From sequence record NC_019526.1: a DNA stretch of 64,000 bases. The stretch is one strand, 5' to 3'. Made by a program: the position numbers and the translations under genes. Shown piece by piece: positions 1,788-27,232 of this stretch. How positions within the stretch are numbered: position 1 is the first letter of the stretch; each line of letters starts with the position of its first letter. The notes beneath the pieces are model-generated. The model searched no databases, had not been told where the DNA came from, and saw only the letters and a program-made list of their open reading frames with translations.

Positions 1788-2094
1788 TGAATGTGTGAAA
1801 AAGAAAATAGAATTTATACAAATGACATGTAAGGTAATTTTCGATTTAGCACACAATACCAATATGCCAACCTTGTTCAAAGAAGAATTATTATTAAGTA
1901 CTGAGGTTATTTTTGAAGAATATTTCAGTACTAAATTATATTTAAAATATGGTAACTTTTACAAAATTCACGGCTTTACTATATGTAGTTCAAATGGAAG
2001 TGTCCATATTACAACTTCATACGGCTATTTCGAATTAACAGAAAGTACTGTAAAAAATTTATATGAATATCCATCAAAAATGAGAGTAAATTAA
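1762..2094 (+). CDS. hypothetical protein, small paralogue family
   Basis: ORF track; TAATG coupling to next gene. Confidence 0.6.
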   Translation: MRFLGMNGNECVKKKIEFIQMTCKVIFDLAHNTNMPTLFKEELLLSTEVIFEEYFSTKLYLKYGNFYKIHGFTICSSNGSVHITTSYGYFELTESTVKNLYEYPSKMRVN

Positions 2095-2294
2095 TGAAAA
2101 AATGTTCGTGTTGTGGATCTACTCAAATTGCACGTTTTCGATTAGATTCTGATTGGGCCGTTGGTTGTGGTGATTTCTACCCAGTTAATGATGATTCAGA
2201 ATATACTGAAGAACAACTGAAAGATTTTGATAATAGTTGGAGACCAGATTTTGAGTTTCTATATTGTTTGAATTGTAATTCGGTACAGGAATGA
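2094..2294 (+). CDS. small Zn-ribbon-like protein
   Basis: CSCCG near N-terminus and CLNCN near C-terminus. Confidence 0.65.
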   Translation: MKKCSCCGSTQIARFRLDSDWAVGCGDFYPVNDDSEYTEEQLKDFDNSWRPDFEFLYCLNCNSVQE

Positions 2295-2829: not shown

Positions 2830-3443
2830 AAACAGATTATTCAAAACTAAGAACAAAACTTTATGGAATTATAGAGGGGCTATCTCTAATCGATCCAAAG
2901 TACTATGAATTGCGTCGTTTACTTGCATTCGCCGAACAATATCATTGTAATACACGAAAAGATGGTTCTGAAGAATTCTCTCATCAATTGCAAATGCTTG
3001 GATTGGCTCTTACGCTTCATGAATCGCTGTGTAAGCCGTTTGAAGTATACATGGCAATTGTATCTCATGATTTAATCGAAGACTATCCAGAAGCTTCTGA
3101 AACGCTTGAGATGTTATTCCCTGATGTAATCCAATATAGTCGTAAACTGGCTAAATTTAAAGATTCAAATACTGATGAAGATTCATACTATGGATACTTT
3201 AATCAGCTTTCTAATTGTCAAGTATGTTCAATTGTAAAACTAGTAGATAGAGTGCACAATTTGAGTACCGCACCTGGTGTATTCAGTACAGAAAAAATTA
3301 TAAGTTATTGTGATGAAACTGATAAGTATTTCTTTGATATGATAAAAAAATCCAAAGTTATGTTCAATCAGCGTTCAGCTTATGAAGTTCTAAAATTCAT
3401 GTTGAATACCGAAGTCAGTACTATCAGGAATTTATTAAAATGA
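2826..3443 (+). CDS. HD-domain (p)ppGpp hydrolase-like protein (SpoT/Mesh1-type small alarmone hydrolase)
   Basis: H-x3-RKDG...H...HDLIEDY...VKLVDRVHNL matches the RelA/SpoT hydrolase motif series. Confidence 0.75.
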   Translation: MKTDYSKLRTKLYGIIEGLSLIDPKYYELRRLLAFAEQYHCNTRKDGSEEFSHQLQMLGLALTLHESLCKPFEVYMAIVSHDLIEDYPEASETLEMLFPDVIQYSRKLAKFKDSNTDEDSYYGYFNQLSNCQVCSIVKLVDRVHNLSTAPGVFSTEKIISYCDETDKYFFDMIKKSKVMFNQRSAYEVLKFMLNTEVSTIRNLLK

Positions 3444-3646
3444 AAATAGTTTTAGAATTTGCATTTATTATTTTTGGTTTCATTTGGTTCACTGCTATTT
3501 CAATTTTTGCTGGATATCTCATTATTAAACCGGATATGTTGATTTTCTACTGGATTTTGACTTTAATTGCATTCATCAGTGTTGTCTGTTTGTCTTATAA
3601 ACTGGTATATCTATATGCAGATGAAATCAAAAAATATAACACTTAG
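3440..3646 (+). CDS. small two-TM membrane protein
   Basis: Two hydrophobic stretches in 68 aa; ATGA overlap. Confidence 0.7.
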   Translation: MKIVLEFAFIIFGFIWFTAISIFAGYLIIKPDMLIFYWILTLIAFISVVCLSYKLVYLYADEIKKYNT

Positions 3647-3679
3647 TTGGCTTTATGTTGAAAAGATTTAAAATCGATA

Positions 3680-3709
3680 TTGAATAAACATTTCTCCTTG
3701 TGATATAAT
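3680..3709 (+). promoter_or_regulatory. sigma70-type early promoter (extended -10)
   Basis: TTGAAT-N18-TATAAT with TG at -15/-14. Confidence 0.65.
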
Positions 3710-3753
3710 ACTATATGTAAAAGGATTTTACATAAGCACAAGGAGAGTCAAAG

Positions 3754-4482
3754 ATGATAGATAATTTAGCATTTGCATCCGAAATGGCTAATCAGTTGAA
3801 CATGAGCAATTTTCAGAGTCTTACGCCAGTGATGGCGGAATATGCTGTTGCTCATGCCACCTGTGGTGAACAAGTTGGATCAGCAAATTTATTGGCTGAT
3901 GTATTCAGTACTGTACAAAGTACCCAATACAGTGTTAAAATGTATAGGGATAAGTTTGTACAGTTGTATATGCTTGATGTAATAAAAGAAGAACCAGAAT
4001 GGACTGATTTTATTATTGAGCGTAGGATTAGTGGTGTTTCTAATCCAGATAAAGACGCAGTACAAGTATTTGATGAAATACTTCAAGATGTATATAGTAA
4101 TGAACAAAAAAGTCTAAATCAATACAATGTACGTTCTACCAAGACAGTGCTCGTGGGATTTGATGAAGATGAAGAATATTACTATTTTCGTTGTACTGAA
4201 GTAGATTTTAAATACGAAACTCCCAGTACAGTGAAAGTTAAAGAATTTACTGAAAAGAGTAAAAACTTCAAAAAACATTCTTCTAATATTAGTAATATAG
4301 TTGGTTATAATAAAGATGGTATTGATATATATCAATGGGTACATCCAAATAATTCAACTTATACCAGATGTTTAAAGAAACGTTATAATTTAAAACAAGA
4401 AGAATCATTTTATTTTAAGATAAAGAAACATTCTTATCAACGACCTGATGAATCAGTGTTACTTGGTATGATTTACTTCTGA
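3754..4482 (+). CDS. monocistronic early hypothetical protein (242 aa)
   Basis: AAGGAG RBS; own promoter and terminator. Confidence 0.8.
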   Translation: MIDNLAFASEMANQLNMSNFQSLTPVMAEYAVAHATCGEQVGSANLLADVFSTVQSTQYSVKMYRDKFVQLYMLDVIKEEPEWTDFIIERRISGVSNPDKDAVQVFDEILQDVYSNEQKSLNQYNVRSTKTVLVGFDEDEEYYYFRCTEVDFKYETPSTVKVKEFTEKSKNFKKHSSNISNIVGYNKDGIDIYQWVHPNNSTYTRCLKKRYNLKQEESFYFKIKKHSYQRPDESVLLGMIYF

Positions 4483-4488
4483 TTAGCA

Positions 4489-4522
4489 GTCCAGTACAAT
4501 ATAAGTACTGGACATTTTTTTT
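4489..4522 (+). terminator. intrinsic terminator
   Basis: GTCCAGTAC-N7-GTACTGGAC followed by ATTTTTTTT. Confidence 0.8.
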
Positions 4523-4533
4523 AAGGTAAAAAA

Positions 4534-4812
4534 TTGAATATATTACAAAAAGTCAATTTATTTGGAAAAGCGTATGTAAATGCTTTTTATGATATTGATA
4601 AACGTTATGAATATGCTAATTTTTTAAATAGAGAAATTGAATTTAGTAGAATGAATAGGTTATTGTCTGGTAAACGAGTAACTATTATTTTTAATGGTTA
4701 TCAGGGATATATTAATCAAATTCGCCATCTAGATAAGAAAATTTTTGCATTCGTTTATACTAATAATGGAAATTTATTGGTTAATGTATCTTTTTTGGAA
4801 TTGATTGAATGA
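4534..4812 (+). CDS. hypothetical protein, small paralogue family
   Basis: TTG start after AAGG; LSGKRVTIIFNGYQGYINQI beta-barrel-like half. Confidence 0.65.
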   Translation: MNILQKVNLFGKAYVNAFYDIDKRYEYANFLNREIEFSRMNRLLSGKRVTIIFNGYQGYINQIRHLDKKIFAFVYTNNGNLLVNVSFLELIE

Positions 4813-5093
4813 AATTAATAGACCAAGTTATTCTTTATAAGAAAGTATTTGATTATATGGAAGATTTTCTTGATGGTACACATTATGAATGTTGCATTTA
4901 TGTTACATGGAAAAAGAATGTAATGGAAATAGAAAAAGCTACTATTTCTAAAATAGTTCGAGTAAAAAGCCTTGATATTATCGGTACTATCATTGAACTT
5001 AATATAGGAAGATATTTTGCATTTTTTGGTGTAAAAGTACCTGAAAATGATTTTGCTCTTATAATTTCATTAGATGATATTGAGTTTCTTTGA
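4809..5093 (+). CDS. hypothetical protein, small paralogue family
   Basis: ORF track; ATGA coupling. Confidence 0.65.
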   Translation: MKLIDQVILYKKVFDYMEDFLDGTHYECCIYVTWKKNVMEIEKATISKIVRVKSLDIIGTIIELNIGRYFAFFGVKVPENDFALIISLDDIEFL

Positions 5094-5434
5094 TTTTTAT
5101 CTATTTGGTAATACAGAATATTATGGATAAATTACACAAAGCATTATTATTTTTAAAAGCATATAGCTATGAGTACTTACAAAGTCATGGAAGATGGAAT
5201 GGTAGTTATAAGGATTTGTATTCATCTGTTTTTCTCAATGAAGTAAATCTTGTGATATCAGAGGTACAAAAATTATATAAAAGAAAACTTGTGCATACGA
5301 GATTTGGTATTGGAATTATTATTGATATATTTTGCTTCACATACGGTACCCTTTTTGCTACAATCGAAACAATAATAGAGAGCAAACCACAAACAATAGT
5401 ATTAAAATTAAGTGAGATATACCTAGATGAATGA
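5090..5434 (+). CDS. hypothetical protein, small paralogue family
   Basis: VHTRFGIGIIIDIF motif, similar to 9074-9340 and 9340-9642. Confidence 0.65.
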   Translation: MIFIYLVIQNIMDKLHKALLFLKAYSYEYLQSHGRWNGSYKDLYSSVFLNEVNLVISEVQKLYKRKLVHTRFGIGIIIDIFCFTYGTLFATIETIIESKPQTIVLKLSEIYLDE

Positions 5435-5699
5435 ACATTTTAATAGAATACAATTAATCACCCAACTTCTACAAATGGTTGATGACACATTTGATGAATT
5501 AAAAAATAATCTTATGAATAAGAAAATCAAATGTAAGGTATATATGAATGATGGTGATTATTTCGATATGCGTGAAGTTGAAGTAACTGGAATTGTTACT
5601 AATATTACTTTATATGAATATGATCTAACTATTACAGTGAAAATCGACGAAGGTCGTGAATATTACGTTTGTAATCAACATATTGAGGTGGTTGAATGA
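5427..5699 (+). CDS. hypothetical protein, small paralogue family
   Basis: Helix then NKKIKCKVY...EVTGIVTNI beta-rich half. Confidence 0.65.
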   Translation: MNEHFNRIQLITQLLQMVDDTFDELKNNLMNKKIKCKVYMNDGDYFDMREVEVTGIVTNITLYEYDLTITVKIDEGREYYVCNQHIEVVE

Positions 5700-7516: not shown

Positions 7517-7791
7517 GAATAAAAATGAATACAGAACAAGCTATTAGTACTATTGAAAATTTAAATAACACTTTAGTAATTCTTGAAAAAATTAAGTTAG
7601 ATGTTGAATATCAAGTACAAAATTTATTTTTGAATAAGAAAGCATTATTTAAGGATGGCACAGAAGGATATATTGTCGAGTTGTTTTCTGAAAATGTAAA
7701 CCTACCTTATGATTTTCAATTTCTTGTTCGTTCAGAAGGTGGATACTTAGATTATATATATGAGGCAAAAGATTTTGTGCAATTCATCTAA
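7513..7791 (+). CDS. hypothetical protein, small paralogue family (ATG at 7525 also possible)
   Basis: FLNKKALFKDGTEGYIVEL. Confidence 0.65.
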   Translation: MRIKMNTEQAISTIENLNNTLVILEKIKLDVEYQVQNLFLNKKALFKDGTEGYIVELFSENVNLPYDFQFLVRSEGGYLDYIYEAKDFVQFI

Positions 7792-8017
7792 AATAATTAA
7801 GCAGTACGAACAATACGTAACTATGCTTGAAACCATGAATGCGGAATTAGAAGTTTCTGCATTTAATTCTGTACATAGATACTTTATAAATCGTCCAGTA
7901 CTTTATAAAAATAATGAATATAGAATTCAAAATGTATTCAGAGATGAAGAAAGTACTATTATTTTTCTACTGTATAATAATATATATGTGGATTATACTG
8001 AAGTAACGTTTATTTAA
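7760..8017 (+). CDS. hypothetical protein, small paralogue family
   Basis: FINRPVLYKNNEYRIQNVFRDE. Confidence 0.6.
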   Translation: MRQKILCNSSKIIKQYEQYVTMLETMNAELEVSAFNSVHRYFINRPVLYKNNEYRIQNVFRDEESTIIFLLYNNIYVDYTEVTFI

Positions 8018-8028
8018 AGGACATAATA

Positions 8029-8973
8029 ATGCCAACAATCACATTAACAGTTGGACTTCCCGGATGTGGCAAGACTACATGGGCTGTTGAAGAAGTTCGA
8101 AGATCTAAAAGTAAAACAGTAAACATCAACCGCGATGATTTACGTGAAAGTATGGCTGGTTCTCATAAGAATTATAAGTTCAAAGATGAAAATGAGAAGT
8201 ATATCGACGCAATGCAAATTGCAGCGGCAGATACAGCAGCAAACAACAAATGGAATATTATTATTTCAGATACAAACCTGAAGTTGTCTATCCGAAAGAA
8301 ATGGAAAGATTGGGCCAAAGCGAATGATTATGATTATAAAGAAAAGAATTTCTTTAATGATTTTGTAGCAAAGGATACTTCGGGTGCTGATGTTCATCAG
8401 TACTTTAAAATTAAAGAATTTGTAAAACAATGCAAAGACTATAATTTACTTCGCTACAAATCAGTACCGGAATCGGTAATTGATACAATGGCTGATTCTT
8501 ATTTGTATAGTACTATGCCAGTTCCTTCTATTCAGAAAGATTCGATGTATGATTTTAATACTGAATATATCATTGTTGATATTGATGGTACTTTAGCACA
8601 TAGGGGAAATCGCAACCCATATGATGAAAGTACTGTACTGGAAGATACACCAGATCTTGAAGTTATTCGTTCAGTACTGGCTGAAGTGAACCATCATAAA
8701 CGAAAGGTTATTATCATGAGTGGTCGTCATGAAACTTGTGCAAAAGACACTCGTTTGTGGCTCCATGAAAATGGAGTTCCATTTGAATATCTTTTCATGC
8801 GTTCAGAAAATGACAATCGCCCTGATGATGTGGTAAAATATGAATTGTACATGAATCATGTTGCACCATATTATAATGTTGTTAAAGTTTATGATGACCG
8901 CCAACAAGTGTGCACGATGTGGCGTAAATTATTGAAATTGAAAGTTTTTCAAGTTGATTTTGGTAATTTTTGA
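8029..8973 (+). CDS. pseT: polynucleotide 5'-kinase / 3'-phosphatase (T4 PseT-like)
   Basis: P-loop GLPGCGKTT; HAD motif DIDGTLA; SGR and YDDR motifs. Confidence 0.92.
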   Translation: MPTITLTVGLPGCGKTTWAVEEVRRSKSKTVNINRDDLRESMAGSHKNYKFKDENEKYIDAMQIAAADTAANNKWNIIISDTNLKLSIRKKWKDWAKANDYDYKEKNFFNDFVAKDTSGADVHQYFKIKEFVKQCKDYNLLRYKSVPESVIDTMADSYLYSTMPVPSIQKDSMYDFNTEYIIVDIDGTLAHRGNRNPYDESTVLEDTPDLEVIRSVLAEVNHHKRKVIIMSGRHETCAKDTRLWLHENGVPFEYLFMRSENDNRPDDVVKYELYMNHVAPYYNVVKVYDDRQQVCTMWRKLLKLKVFQVDFGNF

Positions 8974-8981
8974 TAATTATT

Positions 8982-9022
8982 GAAGGGGAACACTTGACCC
9001 CCTTCTCTTCTTTTGATAAAAT
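8982..9022 (+). promoter_or_regulatory. sigma70-type promoter whose -35 lies in the loop of a terminator-like hairpin
   Basis: TTGACC(8994)-N17-TAAAAT(9017); stem GAAGGGG/CCCCTTC at 8982-9005. Confidence 0.65.
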
Positions 9023-9073
9023 AGAACTACAAATAGAAAAAAATAATCAAGACTCAGTACTTGGGATAAGAAA

Positions 9074-9340
9074 ATGAAACAATTTTATGAGCACTGGAAA
9101 ATGTTGTTTAATAGTACAGAGTCGTTTTACTGGAATAGATATTATTCCGGTTGTATCAATGAATTGTATAATCATTTTTTATATGAAGCTACTTCATCAT
9201 TAAAAGGACAAACAGTTCAACACAACGTACTCGGCGAATGTAGAATTACAAGAGTTTATTCTTTTTATGATGATGAATTATTTTGTACAATATATTCGAA
9301 TTTATACAGAATGGATGTAAAATTGCGAGATTTAATTTAA
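9074..9340 (+). CDS. hypothetical protein, small paralogue family
   Basis: HWKMLFNSTESFYWNRYYS aligns with HTWEMLFDLTDDFYPGNYS (10873). Confidence 0.7.
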   Translation: MKQFYEHWKMLFNSTESFYWNRYYSGCINELYNHFLYEATSSLKGQTVQHNVLGECRITRVYSFYDDELFCTIYSNLYRMDVKLRDLI

Positions 9341-9642
9341 TGAATTTATCAGAATGTGTAAAATTGACTAAATTTTTAGATTCAGTGAATGATCGTATGT
9401 TTGAGGAATTTTGTGATAATTCTGAATATTTAAATATAGTAATGGGTATTTTTCATAAACATCTAAATTTGTATATTGATGAACTGAATAAAAAACTAAA
9501 AAACAGAGAACTTTTCGTGTATGGTTTAGGTTACTGTGTAATTTATGATGTTTATCGTTCGATACGCGGTGAATTAAAATGTACAGTAACATTTGAAAAT
9601 GATTATCATAATGTCTATATGAAATACTCAAAACTCGTATGA
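9340..9642 (+). CDS. hypothetical protein, small paralogue family (start moved to the TAATG overlap)
   Basis: LKNRELFVYGLGYCVIYDVY; in frame with track ORF 9283. Confidence 0.65.
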   Translation: MNLSECVKLTKFLDSVNDRMFEEFCDNSEYLNIVMGIFHKHLNLYIDELNKKLKNRELFVYGLGYCVIYDVYRSIRGELKCTVTFENDYHNVYMKYSKLV

Positions 9643-21911: not shown

Positions 21912-22550
21912 TTATTCTACTGTGACTTCAACAGTATCAGTTTTGTTTCCATCATTGGTGGTTACAGTTATAGTTGCAGTACCAGTAGCTACATATGAAA
22001 CTAGTCCAGTACTATCTACAGTACAAACACCCTCTGCACTGGAAGACCATGTAACAGATTTATCGGTTGCATCCAATGGTAGTACTGAGATACTCAATTG
22101 TTCAGTACCACCTACAGCACCAGTAAGCGTTTTTGGTGAAACGGTAACGCTTTCTACATGAACGACTGGTGGTTTTACGTTAGTGCGTCTAAAAATAAAT
22201 CCACCATTGTCCAACTTGACTTTGTTGAGTTGGTAGAGTATACTGAATCCCTCGACACCGGTTTTTGGGTCAGATTCTTTGATACAAAAGGTATTTACTG
22301 CTAGTGAATCAGCAATATCTTCGTCAGCATCGGAATATTTTAGTGCTACCAGATTTGAATCGCGGTGAACTAGTCTAATAAATGTATAAACAGTTCCATC
22401 TGTGGAAATCAAATCATACACATCAAAAGTTCTTTGTTTGTATACAAATAGGTCGCCAACATGAACTGTACCATTAACATTTGCCGCAGTGACTTTCAAT
22501 CCATCAACAACAAACGGATAATGGTTTTGTTTTGCGATAACACGTGCCAT
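21912..22550 (-). CDS. Ig-like (Big_2) domain protein, probable virion decoration/tail accessory
   Basis: Reads on the minus strand (CAT at 22548-22550; track label + is wrong); VESVTVSP...DATDKSVTWSSS...VDSTGLV...TATITVTT. Confidence 0.85.
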   Translation of the reverse strand: MARVIAKQNHYPFVVDGLKVTAANVNGTVHVGDLFVYKQRTFDVYDLISTDGTVYTFIRLVHRDSNLVALKYSDADEDIADSLAVNTFCIKESDPKTGVEGFSILYQLNKVKLDNGGFIFRRTNVKPPVVHVESVTVSPKTLTGAVGGTEQLSISVLPLDATDKSVTWSSSAEGVCTVDSTGLVSYVATGTATITVTTNDGNKTDTVEVTVE

Positions 22551-22649
22551 TATTTTCTCCCTTTTATAAAAACTTGTAAACGTTATTAAATTTATGTTTA
22601 TTATAAAATTTTATATAACCTTACTATTATTTACCAATTTAGAGGAAAT

Positions 22650-23246
22650 ATGTTTATTGTACTAAAAGAATTTTTATATAATACATTAATTGCTTTTTCA
22701 CTTATTTTCCCATCACATGATATTCAACAGAATGTAACTGTAAACGATAGTAACGTATTAATTTTTAATACGAAAATAAACGACGAATCAGTACAAAGAG
22801 CGGAAACATTATATAAGAAATATAAGTACAAAACCATTTCTATTACCTCACCGGGAGGTGATGTGAATTCTAGTTTCGAATTAGCAGTCTTTGCTTCTGA
22901 CCATAATATTAAAGTTCATGTACCACAGTACTGTGCAAGTGCATGTACAGTTATATTTTTTGCTGCTGATAAACAAAACAGAGTTATGGATAAAGATGCT
23001 ATTATTGCTATTCATAATGTTTCGGTTGTGGCTAATGATGATATTTCTGGTAATGAAACCATATCTATCAATACTGCCATGGATTTAATGAAAGATACAT
23101 CAGAAATCGTAGCAGCTATGTATAGTTTATATGCATATGTTGGTATTCCAGGTGAAATCCTGATGAGAACAAGCACTATGCACGGAGCTGATTCTTATCA
23201 AATAACAAAAAAACAACTCCAAATGTGGGGCATTTTAGAAAAATAA
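22650..23246 (+). CDS. second ClpP/crotonase-like protein with N-terminal hydrophobic segment
   Basis: ITSPGGDV, YCASAC (Ser) and IAIHN (His); GAGGA RBS. Confidence 0.65.
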   Translation: MFIVLKEFLYNTLIAFSLIFPSHDIQQNVTVNDSNVLIFNTKINDESVQRAETLYKKYKYKTISITSPGGDVNSSFELAVFASDHNIKVHVPQYCASACTVIFFAADKQNRVMDKDAIIAIHNVSVVANDDISGNETISINTAMDLMKDTSEIVAAMYSLYAYVGIPGEILMRTSTMHGADSYQITKKQLQMWGILEK

Positions 23247-23248
23247 AT

Positions 23249-23277
23249 CTGTACAAGAATATCATTTGTGATATAAT
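23249..23277 (+). promoter_or_regulatory. extended -10 sigma70-type promoter
   Basis: TG-A-TATAAT at 23269-23277; weak -35. Confidence 0.6.
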
Positions 23278-23284
23278 AATTAAA

Positions 23285-23333
23285 CAGAGAGTGATGTAGC
23301 TCTCTTTTATATAGCTTAGGGAGTACTAAGACA
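23285..23333 (+). promoter_or_regulatory. two-hairpin 5' leader with SD in loop (copy 1)
   Basis: AGAGAG-N8-CTCTCT then CTTAG-GGAGTA-CTAAG. Confidence 0.6.
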
Positions 23334-24398
23334 ATGAAAGAAAAAGTTTATGTATATATTGGACGTTTCCAAATTCCACATATTGGTCATGAAGAAGTCC
23401 TCAAACATGCGATCAAAATTGCAGATCGTGTTATCATTCAGGTCGGTTCAAGTGAACTGGCTCGTGATCCAAAAAACCCATTCACGTTTGAAGAACGTAA
23501 GTCAGTACTAGAAGAAATTACAAAACGTGTAGCTCAAGATGAATGGAATAAAGGTCGAACTGTTAAAATCGATATTATGCCATTACATGATTATGTATAT
23601 GATAATAATGCATGGCTAAAAGAAGTACAGGATAATGTTAAAACATGTACTTCAAGTAATGATATTACTATTACTGGTTGTCGTAAAAATGGTGATAACA
23701 GTACTGAATATCTTAACTATTTTCCTCAATGGAAAAATGACTTCATTAACGAAGTACAAAGTAATGCAAAGGGTACTATTAGTAGTACTGAACTACGCGA
23801 AGCTTTCTTTGTCTCTGGTAAAGTTCCAACTGAATTTGTTTCAAAAGAAACAACAGAATTTCTAGAAAATTTTGTCAGTACTAAACCAGATGTATTCGAT
23901 AATCTTATTAAAGAATATGAATTCATTAATCGTTATATTGAACAAATGAAAGAAGCACTACCTTATGATATTCCATTTTTGACGGGTGATGCTATCGTTG
24001 TGGCTGCGGGACATGTACTCTTGGGACGTCGAAGAACTCAACCAGGCTTGAATAACCTCTGTATCCCTGGGGGATTCATACAGGCATTTTCTGATAAAGA
24101 TCAAATTGATACGGCTATTCGTGAACTTAAAGAAGAAACAAAAATTGATGTACCAGAAAAAGTACTTCGTGGTAATATAGTAAACGTAATGGATTTTTCT
24201 GATATGAATCGTTCCTTGCGTTGGCGTATTCTCACTAAAGCAGTACTGATCCAGTTACCAGACACTACATTACCAAAAGTAAAAGGGAGTGATGATCTAA
24301 AACATGCTCAATGGATCCCACTGAGTGATGTTGAAAAATATCGTGATCAATTTTTTGAAGATCACTATAGTATCTTACAAATTATGCTAAAATTATAA
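23334..24398 (+). CDS. nadM: bifunctional NMN adenylyltransferase / ADP-ribose pyrophosphatase (NadM-Nudix, KVP40 NatV-like)
   Basis: GRFQIPHIGH (HxGH), ISSTELR and Nudix box GG...AIRELKEET. Confidence 0.9.
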   Translation: MKEKVYVYIGRFQIPHIGHEEVLKHAIKIADRVIIQVGSSELARDPKNPFTFEERKSVLEEITKRVAQDEWNKGRTVKIDIMPLHDYVYDNNAWLKEVQDNVKTCTSSNDITITGCRKNGDNSTEYLNYFPQWKNDFINEVQSNAKGTISSTELREAFFVSGKVPTEFVSKETTEFLENFVSTKPDVFDNLIKEYEFINRYIEQMKEALPYDIPFLTGDAIVVAAGHVLLGRRRTQPGLNNLCIPGGFIQAFSDKDQIDTAIRELKEETKIDVPEKVLRGNIVNVMDFSDMNRSLRWRILTKAVLIQLPDTTLPKVKGSDDLKHAQWIPLSDVEKYRDQFFEDHYSILQIMLKL

Positions 24399-24416
24399 TA
24401 AAAAAATAGAACATGG

Positions 24417-25442
24417 ATGTTCATAATGTATAGAATAATAAAAACTGATTATAATTATGATTTTTATTATATGTTACCACAAGATATAATCAATTATAAT
24501 TCTAGATATCAAGAACCACAAAAATTGATAGATAATATTAATAATATAAAAATACAAAATTTAACTGTTATTGGTTTTTTTATAAAACATGAAAATGAAT
24601 ATAAAGCAACCAAAACAAAAATTTTAGTTGCATATCATAATATATATTACATCATATTATATAATAATTTAATTAGTACTGGTAAGTTTACTGGAAGAGT
24701 AGAATGTAATAATGAAAATATATATTATTACTTATATTCAAAAAGACCACTAAGTACTAACCATTTAGAAATTATTGATATACCAAATAAAAAGAAAATA
24801 CGAGCTAAAGATTATATTAAAGTTAGATGTACTAAAGATGGACATGAATATTATATAACATTAAATAAATTCTTTCAAAATAAAAAATGTCCAAAATGCA
24901 CTAATCAAATAGCTTATGATATGTATAATTTAACAAAATTTGTTTATCAAAAAAGACCACCCGAATATACTGGTATATACATAACATATATACCATTTAA
25001 TATTAATGGCAAAGATGATTATTTATATTTGAAATGTTCTTATTGTGAAACTGAATGGAATACAACAAATATTCATTCTTATGTGAACGGAGGAACTGGT
25101 TGTCCTCATTGTAAAATATCCAAAGGTGAACGAAAAATAAAGGAACTATTATTACATAATAATATAAAATTTGAATTTCAAAAAAAATTTAAAAATTGTA
25201 GAAACAAAAAACAATTACCATTTGATTTTTTTATTAATGATGTAAATGTTCTAATAGAATATGATGGTATACAACATTTTCAACCTGTTGAAATATTCGG
25301 TGGAAATAAAAATTATGAACAAACATTGAAAAATGATCAAATTAAAAATCAGTACTGTAAAGATAACAACATCAGACTGATAAGAATTCGTTATGATGAA
25401 GACCCAAAAGAAATATTGACGCGAGAGGGTATCATCAAGTAA
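24417..25442 (+). mobile_element. putative free-standing endonuclease (Zn-finger repeats plus C-terminal DUF559/Vsr-like PD-(D/E)xK domain)
   Basis: CPKC, CSYC and GCPHC clusters; LPFDFFINDVNVLIEYDGIQHF; very AT-rich; inserted between the two NAD genes. Confidence 0.75.
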
Positions 25443-25472
25443 AAAGAATTATTACACAGAGTAATAATAAAT

Positions 25473-25519
25473 CAGAGAACGTAGTAGTTCTCTAACTTAA
25501 ACTAAGGGAGTCTTAGAAA
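25473..25519 (+). promoter_or_regulatory. two-hairpin 5' leader with SD in loop (copy 2)
   Basis: AGAGAAC-N6-GTTCTCT then CTAAG-GGAGT-CTTAG. Confidence 0.6.
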
Positions 25520-26992
25520 ATGAAAAACGTAAATCCAAATGTAAACTTTATTTTAAACTGCGACAGCTATAAGATTCAACATAGAAAAATGCTCAAAAAG
25601 CATGTTGATGGTTATTACAGTACTATTGTACCTCGTAAAAGCTCTCCACATAGCAACCATGTAGTTGTGGCTGGTTTGCAATACACAATTAATACCTATA
25701 TCAATATTCAGATTACCAAAGAAGATGTTGATGAAGCTGAAATTGAAATTCGTGAACAAGGTTCACGTTTTGATAGAACTATTTGGGATAAAATCGTCAA
25801 TGAGTTTGGTGGTAAAGTTCCAGTAAAAATTAGTGCTATTAAAGAAGGTACAGTTGTTCCAGTTCAATCAGTAGTTTGTGTTGTTGAAGCTAAAGATGAG
25901 TTTGCATTTTTGGCTAGTTATATTGAAACTTGTATTCAACGTGGTGTATGGTATAGCAGTACTGTAGCATCTGAATGTCGTGCAATGAAAAAAATTCTTG
26001 CTGATGTAATGCAACGTCATGCTGGTCATAAGAATGTAGATTATCATTTCCACAACTTTGGAGATCGTAGTGCAACTTGTTTTGAACATGCATATGTAGC
26101 TGGTATGGCACATGCAATTATGTTCAATGGTTCGGATAGTTTAACTTCAAATCGTTATATTAAAGCTCACTATAATACTACCAAAGCGTATCTGAGTTCA
26201 GTTGACGCTACTGAACATAGCGTTATGTGCAGTAATAGTGATGCTGAACATCGCAATGATTATGGTGCAGCAGTAATGGCGGTAGATCATTGGGAAGAAC
26301 AAGTTACAATGTGGGAAGAAGATGGATTAGGTGTACCAGTAACTTCATGTGTTATTGATACTTATAATGATTATCGCTTTGTCCGTGACTTTATCGGTAC
26401 TAAATTAAAAGACCGTATTGTTGAAATTGGCAAACGAGGTGGTCGCTTTGTTCTTCGTCCTGATTCACGAATTCCTAAAGAAATTTGTATTGATGTAATC
26501 GAAATTCTAATGGAAAAGTTTGGTTATACTATTAACGAACATGGTTACAAAGTACTACCACCATATATTGGAGTAATTCAAGGTGATGGTGTTAATTTCG
26601 ATAGTATTCATGAAATTCTAGATATTCTTGATGAAAAGAAATTATCCCTTGAAAACATTGTATTTGGTTGTGGTACCAAATTGGTTAACCCTGAACGTGG
26701 TCGTGATCTTTATAGTTGGTCAATGAAAGGTACTGCACAACACATCGAAGATGAACGTGAATGGCAAGACCTATTCAAAGATCCAGCAGGTGAACCAGGC
26801 AAACGTTCACATAAAGGGCGTGTAGTAACCTGGAAATGTAAAGTATCTGGTAAGATTTTTGTTGATCGTGATGATCTTGATAAAGTTAATCATTTCATTG
26901 AAAATCTACTTGTACCAATGTATGACTGCGGTAAAATTATGAATTTCAGTACTTTTGATGAAGTTCGTGAGCGTGCTAACGTAGGTATCTAA
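25520..26992 (+). CDS. nadV: nicotinamide phosphoribosyltransferase (Nampt)
   Basis: DSYK, HNFGDRS, ATEHS, VIDTY, LRPDS, IQGDG and VFGCG motifs. Confidence 0.92.
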   Translation: MKNVNPNVNFILNCDSYKIQHRKMLKKHVDGYYSTIVPRKSSPHSNHVVVAGLQYTINTYINIQITKEDVDEAEIEIREQGSRFDRTIWDKIVNEFGGKVPVKISAIKEGTVVPVQSVVCVVEAKDEFAFLASYIETCIQRGVWYSSTVASECRAMKKILADVMQRHAGHKNVDYHFHNFGDRSATCFEHAYVAGMAHAIMFNGSDSLTSNRYIKAHYNTTKAYLSSVDATEHSVMCSNSDAEHRNDYGAAVMAVDHWEEQVTMWEEDGLGVPVTSCVIDTYNDYRFVRDFIGTKLKDRIVEIGKRGGRFVLRPDSRIPKEICIDVIEILMEKFGYTINEHGYKVLPPYIGVIQGDGVNFDSIHEILDILDEKKLSLENIVFGCGTKLVNPERGRDLYSWSMKGTAQHIEDEREWQDLFKDPAGEPGKRSHKGRVVTWKCKVSGKIFVDRDDLDKVNHFIENLLVPMYDCGKIMNFSTFDEVRERANVGI

Positions 26993-26998
26993 TATATT

Positions 26999-27232
26999 TT
27001 GGAGAGTCATTATGGCTCTCCAATCTTTTTAATTAAAGTAATAAAGGTATATAATGTGTTTATTGGTTTTAAAATAGTTATTATCTTCTTTATATGGTTT
27101 ATTACATATCAAATAATTGAAGAAATCAGTACTAAATTCTCTTCAGATAATTTCTTAGTAGACGTTTGTTTATTATCGATTGCAGTACTTGGTTTTTTGA
27201 TCATACCAGTTATATTTTCATATTTTATATGA
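26999..27232 (+). CDS. small membrane protein (start uncertain)
   Basis: Two hydrophobic segments. Confidence 0.5.
   Translation: MESHYGSPIFLIKVIKVYNVFIGFKIVIIFFIWFITYQIIEEISTKFSSDNFLVDVCLLSIAVLGFLIIPVIFSYFI

Follow-up and report, generated by a model that had tools for sequence, protein, structure and literature searches.

A two-hairpin RNA leader shared by the NAD+ genes nadM and nadV of Klebsiella phage RaK2, related phages and some bacteria

Do the two genes with which the Klebsiella jumbo phage vB_KleM_RaK2 (hereafter RaK2) rebuilds nicotinamide adenine dinucleotide (NAD+) carry one and the same control element in their messenger RNA, and how might such an element act? The question is raised by a stretch of 64,000 nucleotides (nt) from sequence record NC_019526.1, referred to here as the window, which corresponds to bases 281810–345809 of the RaK2 genome (345,809 bp). 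It contains, on the plus strand, nadM (23334–24398), encoding a bifunctional nicotinamide mononucleotide (NMN) adenylyltransferase/Nudix hydrolase of 354 residues (Pfam CTP_transf_like and NUDIX; record annotations), and nadV (25520–26992), encoding a nicotinamide phosphoribosyltransferase of 490 residues (Pfam NAMPT_N and NAPRTase; tblastn). NadV and NadM together constitute NARP2, a phage route to rebuild NAD+ after its depletion by bacterial immunity. A first-pass annotation of the window had proposed that an undescribed cis-regulatory RNA made of two hairpins precedes both genes. The analysis presented here indicates that this leader defines a new RNA family of wide occurrence, linked to NAD+ reconstitution in phages and to NAD+ salvage in bacteria, and that it is very probably a control element of the NAD+ rebuilding pathway.

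Structure and covariation of the leaders

The leader of nadM occupies positions 23286–23333 of the plus strand, directly before the ATG at 23334. Its first hairpin (hairpin 1, 23286–23305) pairs AGAGAGU (23286–23292) with GCUCUCU (23299–23305) around the loop GAUGUA (23293–23298). An A/U-rich linker of 9 nt (23306–23314) leads to hairpin 2 (23315–23330), in which CUUAG (23315–23319) and CUAAG (23326–23330) enclose the loop GGAGUA (23320–23325), and the three nucleotides ACA follow before the start codon. The leader of nadV, on the same strand (25474–25519, ATG at 25520), is built in the same way: hairpin 1 (25474–25493) consists of AGAGAAC (25474–25480), the loop GUAGUA (25481–25486) and GUUCUCU (25487–25493), the A/U-rich linker has 8 nt (25494–25501), and hairpin 2 (25502–25516) consists of CUAAG (25502–25506), the loop GGAGU (25507–25511) and CUUAG (25512–25516), followed by AAA. 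In both leaders the Shine-Dalgarno (SD) sequence forms the loop of hairpin 2, whose stem ends 3 nt before the ATG. These sequences stand before nadM and nadV just as the first-pass annotation had written them, and the compensatory differences that it had pointed out between the two copies (G-C versus A-U in hairpin 1, U-A versus A-U in hairpin 2) are real. The two-hairpin form drawn there also holds, except that hairpin 1 is better read as a stem of 7 bp with a 6-nt loop, closed by a U.G pair in nadM and by a C-G pair in nadV. The minimum free energy fold of each leader consists of exactly these two hairpins, at −14.0 kcal/mol for nadM (z −2.3) and −12.6 kcal/mol for nadV (z −2.0).

Among the members of the RaK2 genus the leaders are identical, with zero variation, and the support from covariation therefore comes from other genera. 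The sample of Rak2-like phages (NadV/NadM identity of about 55–60%) comprised CBB, GAP32, Munch, Hallingskeid, BF, pEa_SNUABM_19, fHe-Yen9-04, fENko-Kae01, XbC2, Kaldavass, XaC1, EJP2 and Vibrio phage 2.275.O. Their nadM and nadV leaders share the RaK2 layout, with some exceptions in hairpin 2 of nadV that are considered below. Hairpin 1 is built in these phages from at least eight different stems, including AGAGAG/CUCUCU, CAAGG/CCUUG, GAAAG/CUUUC, CAAAG/CUUUG, GCCGA/UCGGU, GUAGC/GCUAC, CCAAC/GUUGG and AAGAAC/GUUCUU; the closing pair is C-G or U.G, and the loop is G-N-N-G-U-A or, in the lineage of EJP2 and Hallingskeid, GNGGA or GCGAA. Hairpin 2 is nearly always the identical 15-mer CUAAGGGAGUCUUAG. 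The linker varies from 3 to 15 nt among the relatives and its sequence is not conserved. Wastewater contigs of a close relative show an insertion of TC after base 25488, in the 3' arm of nadV hairpin 1, together with many substitutions just upstream.

Covariation among orthologues, which the first-pass annotation had suggested as a check of its proposal, was found for both hairpins. For hairpin 1, the model-derived alignment of the Rak2-like leaders contains double changes in all seven pairs and none of 500 shuffles reached the observed score. Given an unfitted MAFFT alignment, RNAalifold also recovers this hairpin. Of 27 distinct leaders, 6 close the stem with U.G, and such pairs are seen on the sense strand only, which fits the sense RNA rather than the DNA or the antisense strand. 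Hairpin 2 was examined in a gap-free, SD-anchored alignment of 79 distant leaders with distinct stems. Covariation was found there in all six pairs, all four pair types occurring at every position of the arms, and 74% of the cells are paired compared with 41% after shuffling. The covariation score of 0.726 stands against 0.186 for shuffled alignments (reached by none of 500) and 0.13–0.23 for slid controls. A structure-independent test, in which each nadM or nadV start was simply anchored on its GGAG, gave the same picture: the four inner flanking positions are complementary in 86–90% of 163 distinct nadM/nadV leaders, whereas 226 other genes from these loci give about 42%.

In the RaK2 genome the leader is confined to these two sites. 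The pattern of hairpin 1 occurs twice in the window (0.19 expected) and twice in the whole genome of 345,809 bp, and that of hairpin 2 is found in the RaK2 genome at nadM and nadV only. A covariance model built from 17 leaders of Rak2-like relatives scores the RaK2 leaders at 61.9 and 45.4 bits, the next-best site of the genome reaching 12 bits. Applied to CBB, Munch, Vibrio phage 2.275.O and a T4-like phage of 172 kb, the model identifies the nadM and nadV leaders, two sites per genome. A third match in CBB (267747–267799, 23.8 bits) lies inside the coding sequence of CBB_371 and was discarded as spurious, and weak matches within the coding sequence of nadV and at its terminator were put down to chance. 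Hairpins with the SD in the loop were seen at 68 of 94 nadM/nadV starts versus 5 of 199 starts of neighbouring genes. In RaK2, stems of at least 5 bp surround the SD at 3 of 181 GGAG..ATG sites, and the two with G-C pairs are those of nadM and nadV. The element is specific to these two genes, and a generic promoter or hairpin cassette repeated along the genome is ruled out by the presence of two copies in 346 kb. Other Rak2-like genera have genes for a Sir2-like deacetylase and a second Nudix hydrolase a few kb 3' of nadV (7612–9318, 7559–9261 and 7708–9410 in the coordinates of three such loci); the covariance model gave no match there, so these genes are without the leader.

Occurrence in phages and bacteria

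More distant loci were gathered with NadM and NadV profiles. T4-like phages and many uncultured ones, at 30–40% protein identity, carry both hairpins in front of both genes. The stems of hairpin 2 are diverse in these phages (UUCUG/CAGAA, UAUAG/CUAUA, GCAAA/UUUGC, UUGCA/UGCAA, ACAC/GUGU, CGAG/CUCG, AAUAGA/UCUAUU and others), and its loop is GGAGN without exception among the carriers. Over the entire set, the stem of hairpin 1 comprises 5–10 bp and that of hairpin 2 comprises 4–8 bp, the 3' arm of the latter ending 0–3 nt before the start codon. When IMG/VR was scanned for exact copies of the 15-mer of the Rak2-like phages, these turned up ahead of nadM or nadV in many jumbo contigs and also ahead of the 36%-identical nadM of a T4-like phage; thirteen single matches followed neither by an ATG nor by an NAD gene look like chance. 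A canonical hairpin 2 precedes nadV of phage KP27. In phage KVP40, nadV and natV (nadM), at positions 138214 and 94507 of the genome and thus 44 kb apart, have in common the core AAAAUGGG(G)AGCC(C)A immediately ahead of the start codon, a minimal form of hairpin 2 in a phage with characterised NARP2 enzymes. The motif was not found in the NARP1 operon (adps-namat) of Staphylococcus phage P108.

The leader is not restricted to phages. Bacterial nadM-nadV operons of Caulobacter, Erythrobacter, Xenophilus and Comamonadaceae, as well as contigs of alphaproteobacterial metagenome-assembled genomes, have both hairpins before both genes, and the operons of Caulobacter zeae and Xenophilus are flanked by ordinary metabolic genes. 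The first-pass description of the element as a cis-regulatory leader of phage NAD+ genes therefore holds for the leader and its genes but is too narrow in its scope, since chromosomal nadM-nadV operons of bacteria carry it too. It follows that the element is a general nadM-nadV leader, which phages carry along with the module. Its conservation extends from jumbo Klebsiella phages to T4-like phages and to the chromosomes of Caulobacter and Comamonadaceae. A covariation-supported leader of about 50 nt offers a concrete handle on the control of NARP2, an easy marker for NARP2 modules in metagenomes and a ready-made part for reporter assays.

Conservation lies in the loops. Outside the relatives of RaK2, hairpin 1 carries a pentaloop A-U/G-A-G-A or a related R-N-N-G-A/U. 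In the wider set AUAGA was counted 26 times, AGAGA 15 times and GAUGUA, GUUGUA, GUAGUA or GAAGUA 18 times, besides AGUGA, GUGGA, AGGGA, ACGGA, GGAGU and GGGGU. Among the pentaloops, 82% have G at position 4, 90% a purine at position 1 and 69% A at position 5; no recurring loops were seen in hairpins upstream of control genes. The loops of both hairpins fit the common form R-N-N-G-N, and the base that follows GGAG in hairpin 2 is T in 97, C in 31, A in 20 and G in 15 of the 163 leaders. The nadM and nadV leaders of any one genome combine a shared type of hairpin-1 loop with different stems. A search downstream of loop 1 for a complement or pseudoknot partner gave nothing consistent, with partial UCUA matches in some AUAGA leaders. 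The 3' arm of hairpin 1 is rich in pyrimidines (CUCUCU in RaK2) and was also considered as a possible anti-SD; this was rejected, as the sequence is not kept in other lineages.

Between the two genes of RaK2 lies a homing-endonuclease-like open reading frame (ORF) of 341 residues (24417–25442, plus strand), an optional insertion between nadM and the nadV leader that is outside the element. It shows treble-clef zinc-finger/CapR matches and is labelled HNH or EDxHD in the records. The first-pass annotation had named, as the alternative to which a refutation of its proposal would point, a neutral duplication due to the insertion of this endonuclease. This is excluded, as K64-1 and phiKp_21 do not have the endonuclease ORF and have both leaders. 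The ORF is absent from K64-1, phiKp_21 and RCIP0023; in K64-1, phiKp_21 and others without it, the nadV leader is unchanged and stands directly after nadM. Muenster and KP13-7 have different insertions at this site, a longer ORF in the case of KP13-7, and in both the nadV leader is intact. The ORF of RaK2 sits exactly between the nadM stop codon and the nadV leader; the site is a polymorphic hotspot for insertions, which spare the leader. The phiKp_21 locus (2853–5464) is peculiar in that its NadM is 93% identical to that of RaK2 and its NadV only 60%, the hairpins of the nadV leader being identical and the spacer before the ATG 1 nt shorter than in RaK2. This looks like an allele replacement with its breakpoint at or beside the conserved leader.

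Relation to known RNAs and possible modes of action

In a search with 4227 Rfam models, including NAD+-I (nadA), NAD+-II (pnuC) and mini-ykkC, no model matched the leaders at E values up to 10 in positions 22500–26000 of the window, nor up to 1 at the leaders of seven representative loci. Publications on NARP2, on the NAD+ systems of phages, on NrtR and on the phages concerned were searched, and no description of a nadV or nadM leader or riboswitch was found. The statement of the first-pass annotation that the leader is undescribed thus agrees with both searches. By its covariation, its fixed position relative to the start codon and its gene association across distant genomes, the element belongs to the generic class of conserved structured mRNA leaders.

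Several known systems resemble it in part. The guanidine-II (mini-ykkC) riboswitch likewise consists of two short tandem hairpins with freely covarying stems, conservation confined to the loops and a variable linker, and it controls translation with the ribosome-binding region at the second hairpin. It differs in that its ACGR tetraloops pair with each other, whereas the purine-rich penta- and hexaloops of the leader permit no Watson-Crick kissing contacts, and in that it serves guanidine export genes; the leader belongs to NAD salvage, has a lineage-variable first loop and matches no Rfam model. The NAD+ riboswitches of class I (nadA) and class II (pnuC) are also cis-regulatory leaders of NAD metabolism genes, and class I likewise has two similar stem domains in tandem, of which the second lies at the site of ribosome binding, but their conserved bases lie in internal bulges or a pseudoknot that the leader does not have, and their genes and taxa are different. 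The dual-site targets of CsrA/RsmA, such as the glgC leader, combine an upstream hairpin loop with a site overlapping the SD, the two being bridged by the dimer so that the 30S subunit is blocked. Some loops of hairpin 1 (AGGGA, ACGGA, AUGGA) do resemble Rsm sites, but hairpin 1 has no GGA in RaK2 (GAUGUA, GUAGUA) and in the commonest types, and the leader is limited to one pathway. The operators of the MS2 coat protein (replicase hairpin), T4 gp43 and RegA are small hairpins at the SD or start codon that are bound by proteins, some of them autogenously; they share neither sequence nor loop with the leader, which is bipartite and also present in bacterial chromosomes. Finally, the lambdoid boxB elements bound by N protein have a short stem with a purine-rich pentaloop (GAAGA or GAAAA) of the form R-N-A-G-A, and GAAGA, the loop of lambda nutL boxB, fits the consensus of hairpin 1. 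Unlike boxB, the leader comes without boxA or an antitermination context and lies at the start codon of two metabolic genes, together with an SD hairpin.

Two further candidates were rejected. The nadM hairpin 1 passes a loose scan for intrinsic terminators or attenuators because UUUUAUAU follows it, but the nadV copy and the leaders of other genera have no U-tract. PeSL (promoter-early stem-loop) cassettes of T4-type phages place a stem-loop 5' of an early promoter, in many copies at variable genes, whereas the leader is present in two copies per genome, always at nadM or nadV, with its hairpins 3' of the −10 element. As to candidate proteins, RegA (PF01818) was not found in RaK2, CBB, EJP2 and Vibrio phage 2.275.O while being detected in the positive controls KVP40 and G001, and CsrA (PF02599) was not found in RaK2 or in five leader-carrying bacterial genomes, the controls Escherichia coli, Bacillus subtilis and Thermotoga maritima all giving matches. 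Both are thereby ruled out as the shared factor. The enterobacterial hosts of RaK2 do have CsrA. RegB (PF10715) was not found in RaK2, CBB, EJP2, Vibrio phage 2.275.O, KVP40 and G001, in a search that had no positive control.

That a cis-regulatory RNA stands at both NAD+ genes, as proposed in the first-pass annotation, is therefore supported as far as computation goes; the regulation, and the ligand or factor behind it, we infer from the sequences. Our tentative preference, held with less than even confidence, is for a translational operator with two sites, to which a dimeric factor binds that could be NadV or NadM itself. This trans-acting factor would read the two similar loops, R-N-N-G-N with the near-invariant G4, and, when seated on hairpin 2, would keep both the SD and the start codon shut within the hairpin. 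The operator would thus gate the loading of 30S subunits on both cistrons and couple the output of NadM and NadV. The same type of hairpin-1 loop on differing stems within one genome points to a co-evolving macromolecular partner rather than to a fixed pocket for a small molecule. No genes other than nadM and nadV go with the element in every case, and the loop types of the two leaders shift together from lineage to lineage; the simplest candidate is therefore an autogenous control exerted by one of the two enzymes. NadV, like NAMPT enzymes in general, is an obligate homodimer. Both proteins bind purine nucleotides, and their occupancy by substrate or product may modulate the binding of RNA. 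NARP2 overproduces NAD+ and consumes phosphoribosyl pyrophosphate (PRPP) (bioRxiv 10.1101/2024.02.11.579819), and such control would limit the drain of PRPP and ATP. Hairpin 1 of the nadM leader lies where the transcript is predicted to begin and may additionally stabilise the mRNA. If the partner is NadV or NadM, an enzyme would here control its own mRNA together with that of its partner, a new instance of such regulation.

A number of observations weigh against a two-site operator of this kind. KVP40, an experimentally studied NARP2 phage, has a short hairpin 2 of 3 bp at both genes (AUG-GGAGC-CAU and UGG-GGAGC-CCA, both after AAAA), and nadV of Munch, fENko-Kae01, Hallingskeid and EJP2 has hairpin 1 but no hairpin 2 in front of it. 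The motif is missing from the inspected leaders of the NARP2 phages Rhizobium phage RHph_I1_18, CcrRogue and phiAS4; the leader is widespread, not universal. The searches for RegA, CsrA and RegB yielded no binding partner. The concerted loop types come from few independent lineages and could be explained in part by shared ancestry, the strict tie to one pathway across bacteria and phages is a classical signature of riboswitches as well, and a hairpin with the SD in its loop may simply aid translation.

The last two points lead to the alternatives. Two loop-conserved hairpins that sense NAD+, NMN, ADP-ribose, nicotinamide or PRPP and alter access to the SD and AUG would make a very small riboswitch, with an architecture parallel to the tandem hairpins of guanidine-II; we consider this possible, if somewhat unlikely. 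The strict association with NAD salvage, seen in phages that infect several groups of hosts as well as in operons on alpha- and betaproteobacterial chromosomes, speaks for it, as do the separate copy of the leader on each cistron, the covarying stems with conserved loop positions and the failure of the RegA, CsrA and RegB searches to reveal a shared protein factor. Feedback control would be sensible for a pathway as costly as NARP2, and NAD+ riboswitches are known for other NAD genes. However, a hairpin-1 loop that depends on the lineage (AUAGA, AGAGA, GNNGUA, GGNGU) would be unusual for a ligand pocket. There is neither a conserved junction, bulge or pseudoknot partner, a consistent complement of loop 1 being absent, nor an evident alternative, mutually exclusive structure, and no riboswitch model of Rfam matches. 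Rather unlikely, in our estimate, is the more specific proposal that the tandem pentaloop hairpins form a new minimal class of NAD-pathway riboswitch that senses NAD+ or one of its precursors or breakdown products (ADP-ribose, nicotinamide, NMN, PRPP) and induces NARP2, and bacterial nadM-nadV salvage, upon depletion of NAD+ by immune systems (Thoeris, DSR, SIR2-HerA). If the partner is a metabolite, the class would be new and unusually small. The leader might instead act with no ligand or factor at all, as a constitutive expression cassette in which hairpin 1, as a 5' or intercistronic stabiliser, protects the mRNA and shields it from what lies upstream, and hairpin 2 presents the SD, kept because a nadM-nadV module that moves horizontally needs an efficient start in any context and host. 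The position of nadM hairpin 1, which begins 8–9 nt after the −10 element at the predicted 5' end, fits such a role, and so do the SD unpaired in a loop on short, A/U-rich stems and the mobility of the module (bacteria, many phage groups, the allele swap at the leader of phiKp_21). It would leave unexplained why the loops of hairpin 1 are restricted (26 AUAGA, 15 AGAGA, G4 in 82%) when controls show no repeated loop, why G is avoided after GGAG although GGAGG is a stronger SD, and why other genes of the same phages have no such cassettes (5 of 199 starts); we hold it to be unlikely but, like the riboswitch, a serious rival.

Processing is a quite improbable explanation. A GGAG displayed in a loop and an A/U-rich single-stranded linker between the hairpins would suit, respectively, a RegB-like nuclease, which cuts GGAG in the SD of early genes, and the host RNase E, so that cleavage might inactivate the messengers or time their decay, and several of the carriers are T4-like. 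But the search without positive control found no RegB homologue in the six phage genomes, RegB and RNase E act on many genes while the element occurs at two per genome, and bacterial chromosomes have it as well. The host CsrA/RsmA dimer, binding GGA in two loops of which one covers the SD, as in glgC, could exploit the A-N-GGA in or at the hairpin-2 loop, the classical Rsm-type pentaloops that some hairpins 1 have (AGGGA, ACGGA, AUGGA, GUGGA) and a two-site spacing suited to a dimer. This is highly improbable in view of hairpin-1 loops lacking GGA in RaK2, in most Rak2-like phages (GNNGUA) and in the AUAGA and AGAGA types, and of the five leader-carrying bacterial genomes without a csrA gene, the control genomes giving matches. 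At the DNA level, hairpin 2 can be viewed as a palindrome of 15 bp with half-site centres 10 bp apart, that is, as an operator for a dimeric factor such as an NrtR-like protein, NrtR being the regulator of nadV-nadM operons in many bacteria (PMC2330246). Yet the arms vary freely while staying complementary, with no fixed half-site, the loop that would be the spacer has 4–6 nt among the Rak2-like leaders, G.U pairs are found on the sense strand only, and the position is fixed to the SD and ATG and not to the promoter. A neutral duplication made by the endonuclease is contradicted by the two leaders of endonuclease-free phages and of distant genomes. Free arms, sense-strand G.U pairs and endonuclease-free phages refute both DNA-level explanations for practical purposes, and we attach almost no probability to them.

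Transcription unit and neighbouring genes

A candidate sigma-70-like promoter of nadM (TGTACA, 16 nt, TATAAT, with a TG upstream of the −10 element) lies at 23250–23277 on the plus strand and ends 8 nt upstream of hairpin 1. It is a 10/12 match with an extended −10, and such matches are not enriched in the AT-rich region here. All the Rak2-like relatives have a TTGAAA/TTGGGA-N17-TATAAT promoter at the equivalent place, 8–9 nt 5' of hairpin 1. This conserved promoter corresponds to the 'divergent RpoD-like' promoter class of CBB (PMC5259590). Transcription of nadM would start at about 23284–23285, 1–2 nt 5' of hairpin 1. A scan of RaK2 for promoters gave no convincing separate one upstream of nadV, which is probably co-transcribed. 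The only RNA-labelled sequencing runs found consist of wastewater contigs of low depth, which probably derive from DNA and show no 5' ends. A strong intrinsic terminator (26999–27033, plus strand), with an 11-bp stem including five G-C pairs and a T-rich tail, begins 7 nt past the nadV stop codon and closes the nadM-(endonuclease)-nadV unit.

A gene for a ClpP/SDH-type serine-protease-like protein (22650–23246 of the window, plus strand) is situated directly 5' of the nadM promoter; a gene of this type upstream of nadM is also present in Hallingskeid and not in CBB and GAP32. In one uncultured phage locus, a weak match to the YrlA (Y RNA-like) family of Rfam (2036–2151, plus strand; 38.9 bits, E 3.6e-5, below the gathering score) lies about 350 nt 5' of a leader-carrying nadM.

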